Below are positions 5,072 through 53,805 of a DNA stretch of 64,000 nt, piece by piece. The notes under the pieces are model-generated. The model had not been told where the DNA came from and did not search any database. It saw only the letters and a program-made list of their open reading frames with translations. Source of the DNA: Thalia democratica (taxonomy: Eukaryota); contig OZ241829.1 of assembly GCA_965202585.1 (NCBI GenBank), positions 8,618,001 to 8,682,000 on the forward strand, in the 5' to 3' direction. How positions within the stretch are numbered: the first letter of the stretch is position 1; every line of letters begins with the position of its first letter. A program made the position numbers and the translations under genes.

Positions 5072-8000
5072 CTTAAATGTTTAAGTATTTGCACAAAAGA
5101 ACTAACAGAAACTATGAAAATTACTCATATGACTGGTTTTTTTTAAACTGTCTAACCTTCAAGACTTATTTCAAATAAGGAGCTGGATAGAGAGTTTGCA
5201 ATTGCATCCAAGCCGTCAAAACTGTCAACTGAGTAAACTCGTTCTTCAACATTTGCTGCTAATAACTGAAAAATTTTATAATTTAACTAAAACAGTTGCT
5301 TTATATATTGAAGTCAAAAATAAGTTGTTGTCAAAATAATTATCTAGCTTAATAATGTTTAAGTAGTGGTGTGTAGCCCGATGAATTAATAGTATTTTCA
5401 AAAGGTCCATTATCTATTTTTATGAACGTCATTTTAATTTTTTGAAGTCAGAATGCTTATTTTGTTTAATCTATGTATAAAAAGGGTTGTTTCAAGTTAT
5501 TAACCTTCAGTTCATTCTGCTTGATCTTCTTGCCCACTCCGACAGAGTACATGACGACTCCTGACTCCTCCAAAGACATCTGAGCTCTCTTCAGCCTCCC
5601 GTGTATGTTGTCTGATGAACTAAATAGAATTTATTAACTATTTATATTAAGTTTTTTTTAATATTTTAAAGTAAAATAAATAATTAACTCACGGCAAAAC
5701 GGATTTTCAAGTTGTAAACCTTATTTAAGTAAAATGTTTAATAGTAGTACTTCCTTATATTATATATTTAAAACTAACTCTCCATGAGTCAATATGATAT
5801 GAGTTTGATCCATTTTATGCTTTATAAGTTATGTCGCATATTCTATATACCAAACTTTTGTTATTTTAAGAAACACAATTACACTGTTTAACTGTATAGC
5901 AGATTTTCAAAATGTAAACCTTACTAAAATAGAATGTTTTATAGTAAAACGTTTTTATATTATATATTTAAAACTAACTCTCCATCAGTCAGTGTGATGA
6001 GTATTTGATTGGTCTTGCCGTCGTTATGCTTGGGTGAATTCTTGAAAACTTTCAAACTTCTCTCAAGTCCCTCGCACGTCGGAGTCAGACCGCTCGGGTA
6101 AGCGATCCTATTGGCTGATTTCTGGATAAAAAAGGATAAGAAAATTAAATTAATGAAGGATGCAGTTTTAGCGTTATATAGAATCGTTGCACACACTGTT
6201 ATCATTAGTTTGTTAGCGATGTTCGAACTAAGCATCAAAGTTTAAGCATTTATTAATAGAAGCATAAAAAAAAAACTCATTAAAAATTTATAGAACAAAA
6301 CTTCTACAAGGTCTTAGGTTATTTTTGCAAAGTTATCTCGGATAAGTATAAAATATTTAATAATAATGATAAAGTTTTTAGATTGTATTAAAAATTAGTA
6401 ACAAAAAAAACTTGACTGATAAGCAAGTATATAAGTTTACAGTTAGAAAGATGTTTTGTGTGAAAGCTAAAGATGAACGACTAAAAATAACTAAAAAAAA
6501 AGTTTATAAGTTTACAGATAAAAATATGTTTTAAATGAAAGATAATTTTTATTAAAACATCTCACCACAAAGTCGTCATAGCTCCGCAGTTCTTTTAGTT
6601 TAATCTCAACCCGAACGTATTTGCTGTAAAAAACACTTTAGTAGTTAGTACTTAGTAAGCTTGTGCGTCATTTTATGAGTATTTAAAAAAAACTACTAGA
6701 TTGTGAATAAAAATCAAGTTTTTGAAAACTTCATCGTTTTATACATTTGTAAAAAGTGGTAAGTCGTTGTATTTAAACCATTATTTAATTTATGTACTAA
6801 ATTAGCACACGCGTGGTTTTATGAATATTAAAAAAGGATTTTAAGTACAAAATCATGTTTTAGAAAGTTTTATCGTCTTTTATACTTTTGTGAGAAATAG
6901 TAATGGTCAGTGTTTAAACTATAAAGAATCATTAAGTATAAAACACTGGTTTTAATTGTTACCAACCTGAAAATGATAACTCCGACTTGTAGAACAAAGT
7001 CTTGAGAGTGGAATATCTTCACAAGAACGTTGACCCAGTTTAATATTTTCACAAAATTTTTCTTCGTTACCGATCCTGAGCCGTCCAATAGAAAGACCAG
7101 GTCGATGTGAGGCGCAGTGGTTGGACAAGCTATAAAAATTAAATGTTTAAAAAAATGAAAATAATAATAATGTAATGTAAACTGTTGACTTCTAATAAAC
7201 ACAATATAATTATACTAATTGTTTTAATTTCTGAAGTTTTTTACACGTAAAATACAATATACATTCAGCTAACACTAAGTAAAACGACGATAAACTTTGA
7301 AATGATAGAATGAGGTTTTCATACAGAATTCTCAAAATAAAACTTATTAGTTATTAACTGACTGTATATTTCATATTGTTCAAAAAAAGTGTAAAATGCT
7401 TTTCAGATGTATTGTTTATTAGTGCACTGAAATATAAACCGTTTACAAAATAGTTTATGTCTCGCTCTTTCTAAGTTTAGCATAAAGCAGTGAAGTTTTA
7501 ACCATTTTTTTGCTGTTTTAATTTAACTGTCAACCCTGTTCTGAAACGAAATAATTTTATTAGTTAAACATGAAAGGTATTTGGCATCCTCATAATATTT
7601 TGTGTTACTTAATTAAATTAATCATACCAGAACTCATGAGTAGTATTTTGTATCGTGATACTATTTTGTATCATTTAATTAAACAGTATAAATCTTACTA
7701 GGATTGATCAAGGGTATTTGGTATCCTTGTATTATTTTGTATTATATAGTTAAATTTCGCCAGGATTCATCAAAGGTATTTGGTATTCTTGTATTATTTT
7801 GTATTATATAGTTAAATTTTGCCAGGATTCATCAAAGGTATTTGGTATTCTTGTATTATTTTGTACCATTTAATTAAATCTTACCAGGATTCATCAAAGG
7901 TATTTGGTATCCTTGTATTATTTTGTATTATTTAATTAAGTCTTACCAGGATTCATCAAAGGTATTTGGTATTCTTGTATTATTTTGTATTATTTAATTA

Positions 8001-13419: not shown

Positions 13420-14605
13420 ATGGTTTTGAAACTTTGTACAAAAGCTCTTTTGCTGGTGTGCTTTTCAGCCACAGTTTTTTCAGAACACCGCCCCCAAGTG
13501 ACAGAACGTCTTTCACCAGATGCAAATGACGATGCTGTAAAACCTGAAGGCAATGTTTCTGAAACTTTAGCACAGCAAAGTAATGGAAATATTAAAGATA
13601 ATAATGAACCGCAAGAAAAGCCTGTACTTGAGCATGATAGAGACGAAGCAGAAAAAGAGTTTGTAGATCGTTTAGGTGAAGTTGCGAGCGTAGAACACTA
13701 CGGGACCTACAATGAGGGCATGATGGGTCACATAACTGACGAAGAAGCGTGCAGGTTGGAGTTGGAGTTACTCTCATTAACAATGAGCGGGGATAGTTGT
13801 CTTGAGTTTATGAGCACAGTGTATGAGCCTTTAAGTAAACACGAGATGAATCTGATGTTTTTAGAAAATGATCTTTTACGTGAACGCAAGATTCGTATTG
13901 AGGAATATATTAGTGACTACGAGAGTCGTCAAGAGACTGCAGGCACAAATGACTCGGAGGCAGCTGAAACTGTCGTGAATGACCCAAAAGTAGACCCATG
14001 GAGTTCTAACAATGAAACTGGAGACGAAGATGAGAAGTACTTTGAAAACACTTACTACGCAGATCCTGCGAGTAAAAACGATGAAAAAGTTGAAACTGCA
14101 GATGCGAATGATTCGGGCGCGGCAGAAAAACATCAAACAACTGAGAAAGTGGCACAAAGTAATGCAAAACTCTATGTGCCCTGGGACCACGAAACTGTCA
14201 GCTGCAAGAGGTGGAAGACCCAGGTCCTCGACTGCGGCGACCACGACCAGGGTCGAAACGGCCAAAAAGGTCAGAAGGGAGAAAAGGGCGATTCTGGGCG
14301 CGAGTTGAAAGGAGAAAGTGGCGTCACTGGAGATGATGGGGCGCGGGGTGAGAGGGGGCAACGGGGTCGTGACGGTAGGAGGGGTGGAGACGGTCTTCAA
14401 GGCGACGAGGGGCCGAGGGGCGAGGAGGGCGAGGCGGGACCCGGATGCGATGAGGAGGAATTGGAGGAGATGGTGAGGAGAAACGAGATGATGGAGGAGA
14501 ATTTCGAGGAGGCGGTGAAGGATCAGGAGTGGATGGAGGGAGAGTACGAGGAGTTGAAGGCGAGCCACGACGAAATTCATGACCTTATGTACAAACTCAT
14601 GGGAG
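13420..14605 (+). CDS. Ficolin-like exon 1 (signal peptide, acidic region, collagen, coiled coil)
   Basis: ORF-track 13420..14619. The true end is likely the phase-1 donor G|gtttga at 14605/14606. Confidence 0.9.
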
Positions 14606-17600
14606 GTTTGAAAAATTGAATATTTACTTTTACTTAACTTATTTTTTCCGTAACAAAAAAATATTTTTTAATTTTACGTGAACTAGGAAATTATCTAATT
14701 AGCAACAATATTTATTTAATTTTTGTTCTGTTTCCTTCAGTTCATGAGAGGTTTGAACAATTTATTTTTTATTTACACCTTGTTTTTTTTTAGTACTTGT
14801 TATGTATTTTCTGTCCCTCTTCAACGTAGAAGCCATTCATTTTTTTTCAAACAAACTTGCAGTACTGCATTTTGTTATGTGTAATAAATTTATTTGTTAA
14901 ACACACAACGTGCTTGTAAATGATTTCAACTAACAAGTCTTCAACTCACAGTTTGAATCACAGGTGGTCCCTGCAAAGTTGACGTCGGACCGGTTGAAAA
15001 CGGCCGGGCCAGTGCCACGGACGGAACTTACCTCCACAACGGAGAACAGCTCAGGCTGGTGTGCGATGAAGGGTTCGAACCTGTTCGAGCAGAAGCGAAG
15101 ACTTGCGAGAACGGACGGATCTTGCCGTCTGCCGATGAAGAGCCGTTCAAATGCGTGTCAAGGAGTTAGTTTGAATTATAGCGACGTGTGTTGACGTCTC
15201 ATATGGGCTGCAGACTACCTTAAAATCTATGGTTGTTTTTTTTATTTAGGCAAAATGTCTCGAAGTTACAATAAATGTTTGGAATTTAAAATCTAAAATC
15301 TAGAAAAAAACTGAATTCTAGGTATTTTATGTTACTCTGCACCTTTGTTACGTCATCACGTTTTACTAATAGTTAGTTATTGAGTTTGTACTTTAGAAAA
15401 CCACATAAAACGCGTCAAAACAAGTTTTACTTTGTGTAGTTTTATTTTAAACACCAGCTATTGAAGCAACAGATTGTGGTAGCAGTTATAAAAAATACTT
15501 GATACTTTTTCACAAGTTTAATTTTAACACAACTGCGCTGAAACAAATTTGTTTCCAGATCCTAGTTCGTTTTGTAACTAAAAACAAAATAATGAATTTT
15601 TATAGTTATTATTAACAACTTAAATAAAAGCACCATCACAGTAATTGATTGCGACTACATAAAGAAGAGAAACTCATCATCGGAGAGCGGAATTTACACG
15701 ATAAGGCCGCTGAAGAATGACACGACTGAGATGGAGGTTTATTGTGACATGGAAGGCAGAAACGGATGGATTGTTTGTTCTTATAATTATATTCTGATAA
15801 TTAGACTTTTAATCAAACTAATTAACTTATATGAATAAATCTTTAATAGTTGTATTTAACACTTTAAAAGTTGTTTACATTACTTTAGCATTTAAAATCA
15901 AATTCAGATAAAATTTTAAGTCTGTTGAATAAATAAAAAAACTAGAACAAATTGCATTCCTTAGCAATCTATCACTAAAAGTAAAAGGCTTTAAAAAAAC
16001 ATATTAAGACTATTTTTTGGCAGCTCTTTAAAGATGATAATTCTTTATGTGTTAACTACGTAAGTTCTAGGTAAGTTGTGTATGATCAAATTCAATGCTA
16101 CTGATTATTTGAATACAGCAACTATGCTAGCTAAATTCATTCTGTTCGAGTTTTAAGAATAAATAGTTAAAAACAATTTAAGAAGAGAAAGCAGCACAAG
16201 AACTTCGATTAAATTTTCTTCTTTCAGAAATATAAAACTTTGACAATTAAGACATTTTGATTTAAAAATGAGTCACTTGAATAACTTGGCAACCGGAGGA
16301 AAACAAAAAAAAAATGTTTGGTTGTTTCAGTCTAAAACTATTGAATATTCTTTTTACATACCCACAAAATGTATTTTTACTAAATTTGGTAAACATTTTA
16401 AGAAATTAAAGTCAGATATGGGTTAAAGTTTAGCGAATTTAAAAAACAAAATTTTATTAAAACATCAAGCTTTTCTCTGGAGTTTTTTTCTTTCAACAGC
16501 TCTAATTAAAGTTTAGAAACTAAACATCAAACACTACAATCGTCTTTTCCTTAAAAACCAGCTTTTAGTAAACTGAAATCTAATTGACACGCAATTGCTT
16601 GTTGAAGGTCATGCAAAGGAGATTTGACGGTGGTATTGCCAGTTTTGCTCGAAATTGGGAAGAATATTCGGACGGTTTCGGCGACAAAAGTGGAGAACAC
16701 TGGCTGGGTAACAATAAATAAAGATAATCAAAATATCAATAAAATTACTAATAATAATAACAATACTAATATCTATATAACATTAACAATAATCATAAAT
16801 AAGTTAAACAAACAATAAAAGATACATTTTTTTGAATGTTCAAGCTTGGTACTTTTTTTAAAATAAATATAAAGTACTGACAACTTCATTAACTTATTTT
16901 TGTTTAGCTTAAAACTTGTTTAATATTTTGTTGTACAGTTTTTTGTAAAGTTAAAAACACTAGATATAACCAATTAGAATTTAATTTAAGATTTGTTATA
17001 CGTGTTTAGATAATTGTTATAGTTTTATATAAATTAAAAAGAAGTAAAAGGCTAAAATGTAATTAAGTACAGAAAGATCAATGATGTTTGTTTGACTAAA
17101 AAAAGGAAAAATTCAAAAACATTTTATTTTATTTTATATATATATTTTTTTTTCACCTAAATAATATAAAAGTACAAGAGAAGCAAGTCATTAAATAAAA
17201 TTAACTTATACTTTATTTACCATAAATGTATACAAATATCTGTAAGTACATATGGCGGTATTTTATCAAAAATATATTAACTTGAAGTATATTGAGTGTT
17301 GTAAATTATAACGTATAAAAAACAGATGTATAAGTACTAGTGTGATATAAAGTAACTAGGAAAAGAGTATAACAATAGTAAAGAAAACAGAATTTGCAAA
17401 ATTTTTTTATAGCTATTCAATAAAAAATAGCTTTTAAACCTACTTTTCTAGTTTAAGTTTTATTGTTTCAACCTTAACAAGTCAAAGTTGAAGGACAAAA
17501 AACCGACCACTACAATAACACAGGGCTGAGAAAAATGTACGAAATTTTGAAAAACAAAGAGTACGTTCTGAGGGTAGAGCTTGAAAAGTTCAAAGTTTAC

Positions 17601-19877
17601 CGCTACACTCACAGATTCTACCCAGAATACGGTGTATATGAGATGTACATCGACCCCCCGCATAAGGGGCACGCTCAGTACGAGTGAGTTTATCTCTCAA
17701 AGAAAACTATTTGCATGTACGTATTTGTTTCAAAAGAAAAAAAAACACAAGTAAAATGGTAATTTGTAGGTGTTTTTTTTTAATATGATAGGAATTGTTC
17801 TTTTTTTTGTGATTAAATACTTTCACTAAAGGCAAACATTAGTATACGTATTTAAAAGACAAATTATGTGTTAGTGATCAAAATAGTTCATTTTATTGTT
17901 GTTTTCAAAACTCTCTAATCCACTTCAGCTTTATAAACATTACGTGAGTAGTTTATTTAAAGTCAATGTTTTTATAGTACATTTTACCTTGGACCAGAGT
18001 CGGAAAATTTCACTTTGGCAGTTGGTGGTTATTCAGGAGACGCAGGTAGTAAAAGTTAAATTTTGTACTACTTTAAATATAAGATGAGTTTAATATAAAA
18101 TTATTAATTTAAAGATTTTTGAAAGATGAGTTTATAGAGACTGATAAAAAGATTCGAAATTAAGTTTCAAGTAACTATTAAATTTTTTAAGTATTTCAAA
18201 TATAAGTAAACGTTTTAAACAAAGTGATGATGATTAGAGTTTCGTTTTATAATTGTTTTTTATATATTAAGCTTAAAATTTACGCTCTACTACCTTTTAA
18301 CAAATTTTTAATTTTAATTTTTAAGTAATTAAAATTAGCTTAATTTCCACCATGGGTAAAAAATATTATATTTCCGAGTTCTGGCAACGCTTGTGTAGAA
18401 TGTGTTATACTGTATGGCTGTTTTGTTATGGTATTTCGAAAGTGCACTTTTTACCATGTTTGTGGTTTCAGACACAAAATAAAAAACTAATTAATACTTT
18501 TCATACTTAAATTAAAATAATTTCATTTTTCAAAACTTTAATTTAGCTAACTTGAGAAAACTTTAGTGTTATATTTGAAGATAATATATTGCCTATTTTT
18601 CTGTAAAAAAGGCTGTAAAGGTTATGCGGCCATATCTTGAAAAAGTAGAAACGAATTTTTTTAGCACATTAAAATCGGTCCATTTTTGATCTTCCAACGC
18701 TTCAGACTAACAAAACACTCAAATAAGTTAACTTATTGTTCAGGAGTGGCATGAAAAGTATAATCATTTTTTGCAGGAGACGCTTTCAAATCCAGAAACA
18801 ACTCCGATCCGTTCCACTCCATGTCCACTTCAAACGGGCAGCAGTTTTCCACTTTTGACAAAACGAAGGAGAAATACAACCCATTCGAATCACACGAAAG
18901 CTGCTCCAGTTAGTTTGTTTTCTTTAATTTTAAAATTAGTTTTCCGAGTAAGTTGTCACGTTCGCGCATCAGGGCGGCTAGGAACAAAAAAAACTGAAAC
19001 GTTTTGTTTCAAGTTTAGAAGTTTCGCTCGAGTCATTGCTGTTTGCTTATCCTGTGCAACTGTGCCAAGACTTGTCATTTTAACTTACAATTGTTTAAAA
19101 AATTACATAACTCTGTAGTTCAAAGCGAACAAATGTTTAATAATTGTTCACTTGGCATAACAGCATTAGCAACCTGTTAACGATGTAAAAGTTCAATGTT
19201 TCCATAAAAGTTTAGTTAAAACTTTATTTCAACTTATGTCACGCTCAAGTAATTTTGCATCTGTGACACTGCGTAAAAATAAAGTTCACCATTTAAACTT
19301 TTCAAAGAAAAGTTTTCAATTTTTTTACAGATAATTTCAGCATTTGAAAATTTCCCAGAAAAGTTAAACGCTCCGAAATTTTCATTTGAAACTTCAACAT
19401 TCATGTTTTTGCAGAACACTAAAAGTTCAACATTCATGTTTTTGCACAGAACGGTACGGCATGGGGGGATGGTGGTTCAACGACTGCGCGGAGGGTTCGC
19501 ACCTGAACGGAAACAGGACTTACACGGGGAACCATGTGGGGTGGGGGCAGGGAATACAGTGGGACACGTTCGACGAGCTTCGGGTAAAATATTCAGTCAA
19601 ATTTTAATCAAAAAAAATTTTTGTTTTCACTTGAAATAAAATAACGAAGCTGAATGAAACTCACTTTTAAAAACTATGGTTGAAAAGTTAAAACTTTTGT
19701 CGTAAAATTTAAAACCCGCTTTTCTTCTGCAAGCAAAACGTTTTTGGGAACATGCCAGTTTAGTAACATATTAAAATTAAAAATCAATGCCAATTTTATT
19801 ACCAGGTGCCGTTTAAATCTTCCAAGATGATGGTCAGGAGAAGATTTCAGGGAGAAGAAGAGGAAAAATCAATGTGA
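13420..19877 (+). CDS. Secreted ficolin-like protein: signal peptide, acidic region, collagen, coiled coil, sushi/CCP and fibrinogen-related domain (9 exons, ~727 aa)
   Basis: Exons: 13420-14605, 14964-15164, 15642-15772, 16608-16707, 17524-17683, 17978-18045, 18777-18908, 19450-19583, 19806-19877; all GT-AG, phases consistent, 2184 nt in total. Motifs: 21 Gly-X-Y triplets; sushi C..G...C..GF....C.NG.....C; FReD DC..GIYTI..VYCDM..GW, VMQRRFDG..W.EY..GFG...EHWLG, YSGDAGDAF, FSTFD, GGWWFNDC..LNG, IQW, SKMMVR. Confidence 0.9.
14964..15164 (+). CDS. Ficolin-like exon 2 (sushi/CCP domain)
   Basis: GPCKVDVGPVENGRASATDGTYLHNGEQLRLVCDEGFEPVRAEAKTCENGRILPSADEEPFKCVSR; 4 Cys, phase 1-1 module. Confidence 0.85.
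15642..15772 (+). CDS. Ficolin-like exon 3 (fibrinogen domain start)
   Basis: IIDCDYIKKRNSSSESGIYTIRPLKNDTTEMEVYCDMEGRNGWI. Confidence 0.92.
16608..16707 (+). CDS. Ficolin-like exon 4
   Basis: VMQRRFDGGIASFARNWEEYSDGFGDKSGEHWLG. Confidence 0.95.
17524..17683 (+). CDS. Ficolin-like exon 5
   Basis: LRKMYEILKNKEYVLRVELEKFKVYRYTHRFYPEYGVYEMYIDPPHKGHAQY. Confidence 0.88.
17978..18045 (+). CDS. Ficolin-like exon 6
   Basis: DTFYLGPESENFTLAVGGYSGDAG. Confidence 0.93.
18777..18908 (+). CDS. Ficolin-like exon 7
   Basis: DAFKSRNNSDPFHSMSTSNGQQFSTFDKTKEKYNPFESHESCS. Confidence 0.92.
19450..19583 (+). CDS. Ficolin-like exon 8
   Basis: KRYGMGGWWFNDCAEGSHLNGNRTYTGNHVGWGQGIQWDTFDELR. Confidence 0.93.
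19806..19877 (+). CDS. Ficolin-like exon 9 (last coding exon)
   Basis: VPFKSSKMMVRRRFQGEEEEKSM*; AATAAA follows at ~20000. Confidence 0.85.
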   Translation: MPFKSSKMMVRRRFQGEEEEKSM

Positions 19878-44909: not shown

Positions 44910-45586
44910 TTAAAATCCAGACGCAATATTTTGGTGGTTGAACTGCCTAAGCAATGTGGGAACTTTCGACTCCTGGAATTCCCCCTGCTTGCTACCCGGC
45001 AACGAATCCGGGGTGGCGGGCTCCACCTTCTGGGGTCGGTACGGCGGGGTGGCGGTGCTGTCTGTGGGCGAGTTCGAAGGCTCGGTGTTGGTGTTTCCCC
45101 CCGAGTAGACCGAGTTGGGCGAGAGAGCGCTCTTATTGGCTAGATTTTTCAGGTAGGCGGCACTGTCGAGCATTCCGTTGGGGAAGAACTCGCTGTATTG
45201 GGGAAACCCCATCATGGGTAAAGGGCTGGGGAGGGGCGCCGCCATCATCCGCTGGTACTGGGCCAGGAGGGCCTGGGCGGCCGGGTTTCCAAGCAACGGG
45301 TTGGCGGCGAACATGTTGGTCTGGGCCGCCTGGAACTGGGTGAACGGTGACTGGCTGTTGCCTAGCAACAACTTGCTCGCCATCGCCTGCAAGTAGGGGT
45401 TCTGCCACACGTTGGCGTTGTGCTGCCCCGGAAACGGCAGGTTTGCTGAGGGGGGAGGTAACTGAGGGGCGATGGGCGAACCTTTGTGCTGGGAGATTCT
45501 CCTCTGCGCGCCAATGTCGGTTTTCTGCATCTTCATGGCTGGTTCTTCATGGACTTCTTGCTTTATTCTTGCAGCAGTGGGGTTCA
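44910..45586 (-). CDS. TBX2/3: Tbx2/3-like exon 7 (P/Q/A-rich C-terminal region)
   Basis: ORF-track 44910..45587; acceptor tttaacag at 45588-45587; ends in TAA. Confidence 0.88.
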
Positions 45587-48500
45587 CTGTTAAATGATAA
45601 TAAGTTTAAAAGTGTATAATAAAATGTAGCTATACAATACTAAGTATACAAAATAAGATTGCAGTATAAAAGTTTTAGAACAATATCTTTCTACAATAAA
45701 TACCTATTTGCTGCTGCTGCGATTCGTCTGCCGAGCTACCTTCAATTGACGTCAAACGACCAGAACTTTGAACTGTGACGTCAGCACGCTTTCTGTCGTC
45801 ATAACTAGCCATTGTTTCGTAATGTTGCCTGAAATAATTGTTGTTTAAGATAAAATAGAACTACGTTTAAGTATTACACCTGAAATTGTTGTTTTTCATA
45901 GAGTATTTTAATATACATCTCTTACTATATAATATTAGGTATAAAAATCACTTTTGTCAAAACATCTTTAGTCAAGTTGAAAATTCATAACAGCCTGGTT
46001 TATATGCAAATCTTGTTCTAAAAATACCTCAAAATTGTTACAATTTGAAATAAATTCATACTAAACATATGTGCTAAATACTAACCTTTTTTCTCTTCTG
46101 CTCGTAGGGGTTTGCCTAAAACCTTTAGCGAACGGATTCTTTTGAATCTTCAAGTTAGTCACCTGTTTGTAAAAAATAAATTGTTACTAGATGTTATTTT
46201 ACAAAAAGTTAAAAAACAGACTAATAAAAATACAATAAAAAAAAAGTTCAAACAATTTATTTTGGTCTATAAGTTGTTTGAAAATAGTTTGTACAGCAAG
46301 CAAAAAGAAATTAAATTAATGAAAATAAGTATAAGTAAAGTGTTTAATCAGTTATATATTGTGAAAATTGTGCATTTTTATATAATTTTGAAAAAAAAAA
46401 TCTATTACTATTGTCACAAAAAATCCTGTTTCCTGAACAACAGTAACCAGTGACAACGCAGAGATGTGTGACGAAGCTTCCAACGGTATTATGACATCAC
46501 ACTAAGTCACACGCGCCTTTCTCCCCCTAATCCGTCACAAGACATTTTCACGGTAGCAAGTTAATCCCGTGCAAAAAGTAACTCTTAGAAATGTGACAGG
46601 TTTCAGCCTATTAGTTGAAAAAAAGTGCCAAAAGTAAATTTTTAAAAGGTGATTTCAGTAAGACGCTAATCCGTATGATGCAAAAAAATGTATTGACAGA
46701 ATTTTGTTAAGGTGTGCTGATTTGTTTTAGTTAATTTTCGCCGAATACTCATCTTCATATTTATTTCTCGGGAATTTCATGGCGTGTTTGTTTGTTGTTT
46801 TGTTTGAAAAGCGTGACAATTTTTGCACAAATATACGGATTATAAACGTATATACAAATATTTTTACCAATAAATTCCACCACCACACTAAGGGTATCAA
46901 CTTCCGGGTAAAAATCCATTTAGCTTGATTTAAAACCTACTTGTGTGTTTTTTAACAAAAATTTGGTTTTTTAAACAAATTGTAATAGAAATTTCGATAG
47001 TGTTTAAATTTATTTGGTATTAAAACATTACGAATTTGTAGTTGATAACATATGTAACTTAGAGATTTGAAACTAAAGCAAACTGCTCATTGCTTTATTT
47101 TCAAATTAGCAAACAATTTAATAAAATTATTAAAGTCAAATAAAAAACAAAACAAACCTTTTCATTCTGGTAAGCTGTCACTGCAATGAACTGCATTTCC
47201 TTGAACACGAAAGTTTTCGGAGCCTGGTGGTTCGCTATAGTGTCGCTGCATCTGACAATGTGGAACCTCGGCTGGTACTTGTGCATTGAGTTCAGTATGG
47301 ACTGTAAAAATATAATTTGTTTTATTATGGGGATTAGTTTTGTTTGTGTTTTACGTATATTTTGTACTAAAGAACAGCATTGTAGTGCAAATATATAACT
47401 ACAACTAGTTTTGTTAGGCATTTTTGTTTCACAAAAATTATTAAGCTTTTAAAAAAAAGCAAGGTATTGCTTGCATTGTAGTTTTTAATGATTTTGGTAG
47501 AATTTAAAACATGTTAGAGAAAATTTGTCGAAAAGAAACAAACAGTAAAATATATAACTAAATGGATTAAAATCACCTTAACATTTAAAAATCTGTGATA
47601 CAAAACAAATGAAACCATAAGTTTTCAACTATTTTTTTGGCACACAACATTTCCATCACTGCATTCAACAAAAGGCAGAAGCAGCAGCAAAATGAAAAGA
47701 GGAAGCAAAGTAATGCGAGGACAAAGGAGCTCGTTAAGGGCACAACGAGGGAGACGCGAGTCTGGCTTTCCATAAGCACATTACGTCTTTCACACATAAG
47801 TCCGCCCGCATGTCAGCCCGGCATCACTCGCTGATTATTACCAGCACAGGGGGGCTTAGCAGTGGCGACCGGAAAACTTTTGCCTCGTTATCTCCGTCTC
47901 TCGCTTGTCACCACTTTTGTGCCGACTTTCCTCCTTGTTAGTTGTCACACACACACGCAAACCCCCCTTAACGAGCCTAATCGCGTCCGAAAATCCGCAA
48001 AGAGTCGTGTCGTTACGCACTTCCATGTCGCATAAGCTTCATGAAGGGTTCGAATTTTGTCAGCAGTTACTACCACACACACCAATTAGTTATTTTTAGC
48101 CGGTTAAGCCCTTGTTTTTTTTCTTCTGCTTTTTTTAGCTCTTGTGTTGCATTTTAGCCAGCTTTGTTTGATTTTAAAGTTTTAGAATTGTTTGGGCAAC
48201 TTGTATTCGCTTTGTAGGCAAGTTGTATCAACACTGATTACGCTTTAGATCGCGCACAATTATCATATTAAGAGCTTTTTGTACACACACATTTGGTTGT
48301 AGCGTCTCAGGCAATCAGAAAATAAACAAAAACCCTCGAAAATAGTTTTAAGCCGGCCGAATTAGGGCTTTTTTCGTGCTATTACCGTCTTAATTTGTGT
48401 CAGCAAAGCAGATACTAAACCGTTGCAATTTGCTAAGCCCCTTTATGCGAAACCCTCGCTCACATGAAAAACAAATTAATAGAAAAAAAAACACAAACAT

Positions 48501-51500: not shown

Positions 51501-52688
51501 CTAATTTAAAAAAATCATTTCTCACAGCACACCCCCACTTAAACGGACACTCGTCAAGTTAACAACGTGTTGAGCACCAAAATATTATGCAAAAAAAAGC
51601 CGGTTAAAATGAATTTTAAATTATTTCAGTTCCCACATCAGTGGTGTATGTTTTTTACAAAAGTGTTGACAAAAATGTGTGAAAACTTGGTACGTTGTTC
51701 ACATCGGCTTAAAACGCTTTGTTTGTGTGAAAAAGTTGAAACAAAAATATTTTTTTTTACACTTGTTGTTTGAAAAAGTCAAAGCATTATACTTTTTTTT
51801 CACATACTTTATAATGCCATTTGTTAACTGTTCCTCGCAGAAATGTGAAAAGTGTAAATCAACCCATCCTTTTAAGGCAATAAAAACTTTAAGAAAACAT
51901 TTTTGCGTCGAGAAAAGAGTAATTCCAAAGCAAACATTGTAAAAATGTAATCGACGCGACACTTAGATATAATTTGAAATTCAGAAAAAAATCTATTTTT
52001 AGCGACCCGCGCAAAATGGCGTTGGCCAGAAAACTGCGCGTTGAAAAATTTACGTGAAGAAAATTGCCTTTGCTCAATCACAAAAAATAGTTTTGCTTCA
52101 AGCCTCAAAATTAAAGTGTTTGCAAAACAAATCTGGCTGTCTCACTTCTAGTTGAAAACTGATTGATTTGAAAATAATACAAATATTATTGCAGTTGATG
52201 AGTAATTGATTTAAATATTAATTCTAAAAAAGTATATTCTAAAAATTTATATTTGTACACAATACTTAAAAGATTGAAAAAAATATATTAATAATAAACA
52301 AATTGTAATAAACTAAAACTTAATTATTTTCAACCAACCTGCCAGTTTTAGTGATGACCATCTCAGTGTTCATGTCTGAAAACTTCTGCCAAAGCTCCTG
52401 GTTCTCAACTTCCGCTTTCGCGTCGTCAGGCTCGCCGTCGTCATGGTGATCCGATGACGTCATCTTCCTCGGGTTGCCGTAGAGGCCCCTGAACTGCGGA
52501 GGGAAGTCCCCGTATCCGGGAAGCATGCTGGTCTGCTGGAAGAAGGGAGGGAACTTGAGGTTGGGGTTCAGTAATGGGTTCTGTTGGCATGGAAACTGTG
52601 AAAACGGGGCCATGGGGTTCTGAAGTTGGGGCATGAAACCCGCTACTGAAGGGTTCATGAAAAAGTTTTGGGCATTGCTGTTTGACAT
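44910..52688 (-). CDS. TBX2/3: T-box transcription factor, Tbx2/3-like (7 exons, ~547 aa)
   Basis: Exons: 52688-52339, 50304-50209, 50005-49831, 47301-47158, 46162-46086, 45828-45704, 45586-44910; 1644 nt in frame. T-box: ELWQKF...[14 protein letters not shown]...[16 protein letters not shown]...[12 protein letters not shown]...[26 protein letters not shown]...[11 protein letters not shown]...[10 protein letters not shown]. The [15 protein letters not shown] and LTNNISD segments match the Tbx2/3 subfamily. Confidence 0.93.
45704..45828 (-). CDS. TBX2/3: Tbx2/3-like exon 6
   Basis: [41 protein letters not shown]; bridges phase 2 to phase 1. Confidence 0.82.
46086..46162 (-). CDS. TBX2/3: Tbx2/3-like exon 5
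   Basis: [26 protein letters not shown]. Confidence 0.93.
47158..47301 (-). CDS. TBX2/3: Tbx2/3-like exon 4
   Basis: [48 protein letters not shown]. Confidence 0.95.
49831..50005 (-). CDS. TBX2/3: Tbx2/3-like exon 3
   Basis: [58 protein letters not shown]. Confidence 0.95.
50209..50304 (-). CDS. TBX2/3: Tbx2/3-like exon 2
   Basis: [32 protein letters not shown]. Confidence 0.93.
52339..52688 (-). CDS. TBX2/3: Tbx2/3-like exon 1
   Basis: ORF-track 52320..52688; donor AG|gttggt after ITKTGR. Confidence 0.92.
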
Positions 52689-53805
52689 TGCTGCTTTTAA
52701 ACTTATATCAGCTGTTTGTTGAATATAACGTTAATCATTACGCTCATAAAGTTTGTACGCTTTTTTGAGATTTAATTTCTATGTATGACAAAAAATTTTT
52801 TGACAGCTATTGTAAAAATTAATAACATAATATCATATTGTTATTCATATTATTATTTCAGTATAACTTAAATTTATGTATGATTACAAACTAATTTTCT
52901 TGACAAACACAACACTTTAACTCTTTATCTAAGCTTTTCTTTTTAACACTTCAAAAACTCGTTTTAGAAAGACGTTTTTTAAATTAAAACGAAACTGTAC
53001 CACTAGTCTACTAAACTACTTGAAACCTTTCAACACTAAAAACAACTCGTTTGTTATTGACGAGCTGATAGCACTTTGTACTCAATCAAGCTCAAATGAA
53101 TTTTAATAAGTCAACAGCAAAAACAGATACAGGAGCCAATCAATTTAAATAGTTTCCTGTGGTGAAGCGACCAATTAAAAACACACTGTTCGCGCACGTA
53201 ATAACTCAAAAACAACGCAACAAAAGAAAAACAAGTTGTGACAATTCGTCAAGCAGGAAAAAAACAAAACTATCAACAACTCAAATCTCGATATTTTGTT
53301 GATCCGCTACAAGCTACTGCGTCGGCGGTCGCCGCTCGCTAATAAATTCACTTGGAACGAAACCCGCAGTTAGCACGGTCGGCTGTCTCCTTTTTTCTCT
53401 CGTCTCTCAAAATACGAACTACGAGAGATCCGCACGAGGCGCTCTCTGTCGAGTTTCTAGAAAAATTTTGCTGGCGACTTTCGCTCTATGTTAATTTTCA
53501 CAGACAAAGTGCTTACTGCTCACAACTGCAAAAATGCTTGTGTCAGCATTTTCTGTGTCTTTTAAAATTGCTGCTGTCAGCAATTTTGTCAATTTTGAAA
53601 GTAGTCTTTTAAAACAGAACAAAGAGCTAACATTTGTTAGTAAGTGTATCAATGAAGTTTTATGCTGAAAAACTTTTTGAATTTTAAACATTATTCTGTT
53701 ATAAATTCAAAATTGAAATTAAAATAGCATACTTTCTTGAAACTTAAAATTAAAACATAAATAAAAATCTTTTTTCTTATAAATACCACTTTTACTTTTA
53801 AACTG

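Follow-up and report, generated by a model that had tools for sequence, protein, structure and literature searches.

A gene family joining collagen, a coiled coil, a CCP module and a fibrinogen-related domain in Thalia democratica

What kind of protein is made by a gene in which a collagen stalk, a coiled coil, a complement control protein (CCP, or sushi) module and a fibrinogen-related domain (FReD) follow one another? The question is raised by a lectin-like gene at 13420-19877 (+) of a 64,000-nt window of Thalia democratica (OZ241829.1, positions 8,618,001-8,682,000, forward strand); the window is the whole stretch of DNA analysed here, and plain coordinates below refer to it. Collagen-stalked lectins (ficolins, collectins and C1q) start complement in vertebrates, and their chordate origin has been pieced together from few ascidian and amphioxus genes. 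We find that the layout observed in the window gene is real and far beyond chance, because paralogues and independent metagenome contigs share its exon order and phases. The literature and exhaustive searches with exon 1 indicate that the layout is apparently undescribed, and the gene is most likely a variant of the ficolin and collectin (defence-collagen) kind and not a new kind.

Gene structure and family

The gene has nine exons, and three-frame translation gives a joined open reading frame (ORF) of 2184 nt, or 727 aa, with a single terminal stop; an in-frame stop lies upstream of the start codon. The introns are GT..AG in eight of eight cases, and the G+C content is 49% in exons and 25% in introns (22-39% across the whole window). 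Exon 1 (13420-14605, +) ends in phase 1 and exon 2 (14964-15164, +), which is 201 nt long and has phase 1 at both ends, encodes the CCP module. The FReD begins in phase 1 with exon 3 (15642-15772, +) and continues through exons 4 (16608-16707, +), 5 (17524-17683, +), 6 (17978-18045, +), 7 (18777-18908, +), 8 (19450-19583, +) and 9 (19806-19877, +), the last of which contains the stop. From its N-terminus the protein reads signal peptide, acidic N-region, two-Cys motif, collagen, coiled coil, CCP and FReD. A first-pass annotation made from the sequence of the window had placed splice junctions at 14605, 14964 and 15642, which are exact, and had described an acidic N-terminal region with four cysteines, a collagen stalk, a coiled coil, a CCP module on a phase 1-1 exon and a FReD, all of which we find where it put them.

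Paralogues were sought in the window's own 802-Mb assembly using tblastn with the gene model for exon order. The closest, at C2:19.36 Mb, is 89% identical in exon 1 and has all nine exons at 88% identity. Exon 1 is also matched at C5:23.47 Mb (50% identity over aa 203-395) and at C8:33.235 Mb (approximately 30% identity), and the order of collagen, coil, CCP and FReD is kept at all three loci. On two Tara Oceans contigs (L012 and L013, PRJEB4352), exon 1 is likewise followed by the CCP exon and then by the first FReD exon, with introns between them, and the acceptor and donor phases are identical across the paralogues and these contigs. The locus, introns included, is also found in genomic DNA runs with two organism labels from two studies, and is therefore no assembly artefact. 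A further match, C603:9477-10967, is near-identical to C8:33234976-33236468 with the same scores and offsets, and is more likely an unplaced haplotig than a gene in its own right.

The sequence supports a single gene, given that the CCP-FReD part begins in phase 1 and brings neither an ATG nor a signal peptide, and that the order is conserved elsewhere. It is highly improbable that the parts are not expressed together or that the gene is silent, for example with exon 1 alone making a head-less collagen and coiled-coil protein of 399 aa. The three sequencing runs found for the locus are genomic DNA, cover the introns and show no exon-exon joints, which leaves room for such a reading, as do the stop that the exon-1 ORF meets four codons past the donor and an AATAAA in intron 1, though the latter occurs at about chance frequency in AT-rich DNA. 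Speaking against separate parts, the phase-1 start of exon 2, which lacks an ATG and a signal peptide, matches the end of exon 1, and neither the paralogues nor the two Tara contigs depart from this order and these phases. The C8 paralogue has an intron between collagen and coil, and the end of exon 1 is therefore not a conserved gene end. All parts are, moreover, under purifying selection. Beyond the exon-1 donor (14606-14619) the frame reads GGLKN-stop, so that retention of intron 1 would yield a 399-aa protein of N-region, collagen and neck without CCP or FReD; a similarly quick stop is seen in the relatives P0001-P0003.

Relative to the C2 paralogue, the ratio of nonsynonymous to synonymous substitution rates (dN/dS) is 0.16 for the collagen, 0.12 for the CCP and 0.32 for the FReD, and these three modules are under purifying selection (0.12-0.32). 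The neck stands at 0.63 and the N-region at 0.76, which is nearly neutral. Relative to the older C5 paralogue, values range from 0.13 to 0.56.

Outside the assembly, the family is thinly represented. An exhaustive HMMER search of exon 1 against 1.84 billion protein representatives gave six family matches, all of them short ORFs of 122-258 aa; four were traced to assemblies in ENA, three of these from Tara Oceans. The other matches were generic collagens, and the FReD motif was present in none of 156 fetched proteins. A word-indexed search with exon 1 (217-691 aa) added two fragments and no annotated full-length relative. On these searches, the family seems confined to pelagic tunicate and plankton data.

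Within the assembly, the CCP exon also finds divergent members at C1:76.307 and C1:76.316 Mb (L014, L015) and at C9:35.49 Mb (L016), which have 6-10 Gly-X-Y (GXY) triplets, a coil or linker (a Cys-flanked coiled coil at the C1 loci), a CCP exon and FReD exons. In this genome, then, the subfamily of the window gene is younger and less widespread than the collagen-neck-CCP-FReD design itself. A head-to-head pair at C8:59837574-59838230 (-) and C8:59842049-59842745 (+) (L017, L018) has a signal peptide, a QDCRVVCDQ motif, 12-15 GXY triplets that include a GKQGP motif resembling those that bind MASPs, a short coiled coil and a CCP exon. No FReD was detected downstream of this pair by tblastn, and it is possibly the same base with another head. 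Two further loci (L021, L022) hold no long single-exon ORF with a FReD.

Modules of the chain

The start codon and signal peptide (aa 1-21, 13420..13482, +) were read from the sequence as a hydrophobic core followed by VFS/E, and the same N-terminus is kept in the relatives P0001, P0004 and P0151. The mature chain would begin with the acidic N-region (aa 22-262, 13483..14205, +), which has an isoelectric point (pI) of 4.3, with 58 Asp and Glu against 22 Lys and Arg residues. It holds C111 and C127, and four cysteines in all (C111, C127, C262 and C272) precede the collagen. Aligning the relatives reveals a conserved motif directly before the stalk, LYVPWDHETVSCKRWKTQVLDCGD (14176..14247, +), which contains C262 and C272. 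The five aligned sequences do not differ in its first 11 residues (252-262, LYVPWDHETVSC), the pattern C..W..QVLDC.D is kept in the more distant P0002, P0003 and P0005, and similar Cys..VDC motifs occur at distant loci.

The collagen-like stalk (14251..14448, +) consists of five GXY triplets, a GRELK break and 15 further triplets, and ends at C343. Pfam Collagen matches aa 281-339 with 29.9 bits (cut-off 27.2), and C343, the fifth cysteine, is conserved at the junction of collagen and coil. An acidic coiled-coil neck of seven heptads follows (aa 344-395, 14449..14605, +) and runs to the phase-1 end of exon 1. Its 52 residues have a pI of 4.1 and an unbroken a/d heptad pattern over 348-393, the core being L348, M351, N355, M358, F362, A365, Q369, M372, Y376, L379, H383, I386, M390 and L393. 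Searched against the ESM Atlas, the collagen-neck part found nothing except collagens.

Modelling supports, without proving, that collagen and neck form a parallel trimer. The first-pass annotation had suggested a trimer model as a check, and three copies of aa 262-395 passed the controls, with an ipSAE of 0.65 against 0.02 for the best control. The predicted contacts among the three chains are continuous over 277-343 and beyond that coincide with the heptad a/d positions; the runs share at least 91% of contacts, with a partner pLDDT (predicted local distance difference test) of at least 76. Among proteins solved as pairs of one chain, 21 of 30 reach the mark set by the tool, against none of 23 solved as single chains; the tool is calibrated on two copies and not three, and the model was folded without an alignment.

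Exon 2 (aa 396-462, 14964..15164, +) is backed as a CCP module by Pfam, by a profile search of the PDB and by a fold match. The Pfam Sushi score is marginal (21.9 bits, cut-off 20.7). Across six family copies the exon has an invariant set of four Cys, P2, K4-V5-D6 and N12-G13, and a profile of these copies matches CCP proteins only in the PDB, led by factor H (3.6e-11) and CR1 (1e-10), then CD46, factor B and others. The AlphaFold2 (AF2) model has a pLDDT of 84.4, and its top Foldseek matches are all CCP modules (TMq 0.6-0.76, probability 1.00), with E-values no better than about 2e-3 because the module is small. The four cysteines have the spacing of I-III and II-IV pairs, and the modelled fold is a beta-sandwich. 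The consensus Trp between Cys III and Cys IV is absent from all six family copies; at the position of the factor H Trp the module has Ile-Leu, or Tyr-Ser or Ile-Ser in divergent copies. The exon is symmetric, which is consistent with insertion by exon shuffling, as the first-pass annotation had suggested.

The FReD (aa 463-727, 15642..19877, +) is spread over seven exons. Pfam was run exon by exon, in frame, and the FReD alignments are likewise exon-wise, with no whole-domain score. Exons 3, 4 and 8 match Fibrinogen_C at profile positions 4-44, 45-77 and 170-204, collinear with the gene. In the PDB, exon 3 matches fibrinogen gamma and angiopoietin-2, exon 5 matches the FReD of ANGPTL3 at 84-116, exon 7 matches lamprey fibrinogen beta at 230-259, and exon 8 matches angiopoietin-1, ficolin-1 and tachylectin-5A. 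The cysteine pairs 466/497 and 658/672 are at canonical positions. By these alignments the domain is complete and collinear, and its sequence resembles fibrinogen, angiopoietin and tenascin at least as closely as ficolin. Per-exon dN/dS values of 0.10-0.54 led us to reject diversifying selection in the binding loops.

Angiopoietins and angiopoietin-like (ANGPTL) proteins share with the window protein a coiled coil followed by a FReD and give weak best PDB matches for two exons, which raises the reading of a signalling ligand whose clustered FReD engages a receptor (integrin or Tie-like). The layout of coil and head is that of angiopoietins, the best matches of exons 5 and 8 are ANGPTL3 and angiopoietin-1, and some 8 kb upstream the opposite strand carries an integrin-alpha-like VWA exon. 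These matches have weak E-values (0.02-0.05), though, and other exons match fibrinogen or ficolin equally well; angiopoietins, which are receptor ligands and not pattern binders, lack both collagen and CCP; and gene adjacency is no evidence of interaction. We consider a signalling role very unlikely. An open frame at 5469-5630 (-) is VWA/I-domain-like in sequence (…VVMYSVGVGKKIKQNELK…), in keeping with an integrin-alpha I-domain gene at that place.

The N-region behaves as a fast-evolving disordered tail. It matches nothing in Pfam or in the ESM Atlas, and its AF2 model has a mean pLDDT of 39.5, too low for a fold search, with helices only at construct residues 48-154. At low confidence, the model suggests that the region is mostly disordered with a helical core around C111 and C127. 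Large indels separate the relatives: two inserts are present in the window gene and its C2 paralogue and absent from P0151 and P0004, and P0001 (on Tara contig L012), 83-91% identical elsewhere, is short of about 125 N-region residues inside exon 1.

Function and relation to known recognition proteins

Invertebrate FReD proteins and ficolins are mainly multivalent recognition lectins. Judged from its domains, the window gene probably encodes, with a fair margin for error, a secreted, homotrimeric and disulfide-linked ficolin/collectin-like recognition protein, acting as a recognition or agglutinating lectin. Three chains would be held together by their coiled-coil necks and by a collagen triple helix, as the trimer model supports. 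C262, C272 and C343 would fasten the three chains to one another and may also link whole trimers into larger bouquets, a task that falls to the N-terminal cysteines in ficolins and collectins. Each chain would then present a rigid CCP spacer with a FReD head, and at least three such heads could attach with high avidity to ligands repeated over the surface of a microbe or particle, leading to agglutination, opsonisation or capture. The fast-evolving acidic N-region may be a flexible tail with a part in solubility or anchoring and not in recognition.

Several observations weigh against this assignment. The stalk has 27 charged but just 2 Pro among 67 residues, which makes the stability of a triple helix uncertain, and the pass of the trimer model may reflect its memory of collagen and coiled-coil folds. 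In the exon-wise alignment the calcium (Ca) loop reads FSTFDKTKEKY where fibrinogen beta has FSTFDRDNDNW, with Thr in place of the second acidic ligand, and the His that follows the second P-domain Cys (C672) is replaced by Ala-Glu. Distant paralogues retain the second acidic Ca ligand, which has been lost in the subfamily of the window gene. With the pocket His and the Ca loop altered, lectin activity cannot be assumed; for the same reason, ligand specificity probably differs from the Ca-dependent binding of acetyl groups by ficolins.

These changes also lend some weight to a structural or adhesive role in the matrix of the tunic, of the blood vessels or of the mucous feeding net. In such a role, collagen and coil would be the material of a fibre or network, matrix partners would be held by the FReD, as in MFAP4 or tenascin, and cations or polysaccharide by the acidic tail. 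A collagen and coiled coil joined to a long, acidic, Tyr-containing disordered region suits matrix proteins, the FReD exons show no preference for ficolins over fibrinogen, angiopoietin or tenascin, the case for a lectin suffers from the degenerate Ca and pocket residues, and the apparent restriction to pelagic tunicates and plankton fits a lineage-specific material. Set against this, a collagen of 20 triplets is short, as is usual in defence collagens and not in fibres; ficolins and collectins share the geometry of a trimer bearing heads as well as the N-terminal Cys motif; and the family is small with heads that diverge between paralogues, as expected for recognition proteins. We regard a matrix role as unlikely and favour the recognition protein.

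Comparison with ficolins and collectins leads to the same class. Collagen-bearing ficolins are reported from vertebrates and urochordates only (PMC11312191). Like vertebrate ficolin-1, -2 and -3 and the ascidian ficolins, the window protein is secreted and has a Cys-bearing N-terminus, a short collagen broken once and a C-terminal FReD; like them, it is expected to form trimers that may bundle. One secreted chain carries collagen N-terminal to a C-terminal FReD, as in ficolins, but a 52-aa coiled coil and a 67-aa CCP module sit between the two. The window protein further differs from ficolins in a 240-aa acidic N-region before the stalk and in its altered Ca loop and acetyl-pocket His. With collectins (MBL, SP-A/D and CL-K1) it shares an N-terminal Cys segment, collagen, a trimeric alpha-helical neck and a globular head, and presumably also the way in which these parts assemble. 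Collagen is followed by a predicted alpha-helical neck, as indicated by the heptads and the trimer model, whereas the head is Fibrinogen_C with no Lectin_C match in Pfam. The domain order bears out the contrast drawn in the first-pass annotation, in which ficolins lack a neck and a CCP module and collectins carry a C-type lectin head. We class the gene with the defence collagens because it shares the build of ficolins and collectins, though it is strictly a member of neither. Its earlier description as a hybrid holds in so far as it differs from both; the gene is no one-off, being one member of a lineage-specific family whose common base is collagen, neck and CCP.

No collagen-CCP-FReD protein was found in the literature. 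The closest published analogue is CniFL of cnidarians, which has beta-sandwich modules between collagen and FReD (PMC5094078). In CniFL the spacer is one to three Ig domains where the window protein has a CCP, most members have a transmembrane segment, and no coiled-coil neck or acidic N-region is reported. Pfam finds no Ig match in the window protein, which is an analogue of CniFL and not a member. The lineage of CniFL is unrelated, and the likeness is therefore convergent.

Could the CCP module connect such a protein to complement? The precedent is CgCLec-CCP of the oyster Crassostrea gigas, a recognition receptor for which binding to a MASP-like protease and C3 cleavage are reported (PMC8605247). 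It is a soluble recognition lectin with one CCP, as the window protein would be, but CgCLec-CCP has a C-type lectin head, lacks collagen and a coiled coil, and comes from another phylum. With this one oyster precedent, a complement link is speculation by analogy.

In MBL and ficolins, a collagen motif of the G-K-x-G-P type, with lysine in the X position, binds MASPs. This MASP or C1r/C1s motif is absent from the collagen of the window protein, which is free of G-K dipeptides and carries its lysines at Y positions (GQK, GEK) or within the GRELK break. A crude exon-level scan of the genome finds no ANATO match, which cannot decide on C3 (MASP was outside the search), and places NTR matches at C10:25.49 Mb only, away from the thioester-domain loci. 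Exons for thioester domains occur at no fewer than six places in the genome. TED_complement exons form tandem arrays at C5:64.66-64.88 Mb (at least four copies) and C5:31.10-31.17 Mb (at least three), and single loci lie at C8:65.02, C1:71.83, C5:60.12 and C10:22.19 Mb. The complement-type binding put forward in the first-pass annotation is left unsupported, with no MASP-binding lysine motif, a generic CCP without the Trp, a degenerate Ca site and no clear C3. It is decidedly unlikely that pelagic tunicates have rebuilt the front end of the lectin pathway on a shared base with interchangeable heads, a FReD in the window gene and others elsewhere. On that reading the built-in CCP would take the place of a collagen lysine motif in docking a protease or thioester protein, and the hypervariable acidic tail would anchor the complex in the tunic or mucous filter, where microbes caught there are tagged.

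Neighbouring sequence and significance

Elsewhere in the window, two G+C-rich open frames at 44913-45605 (-) and 52323-52730 (-) encode 231 and 136 aa that are rich in Gln, Pro and Asn, like the activation regions of transcription factors.

The thaliacean family would unite a collectin base, a ficolin-type head and a complement-type CCP spacer through insertion of a phase-compatible exon, and would then have multiplied, which makes it a clear natural case of modular shuffling among defence collagens. It also offers proteins with which to ask whether a CCP module can replace the lysine motif of collagen as a docking site for partners. Even if the gene encodes only a matrix protein, it would still represent a lineage-specific material of an ecologically important grazer.

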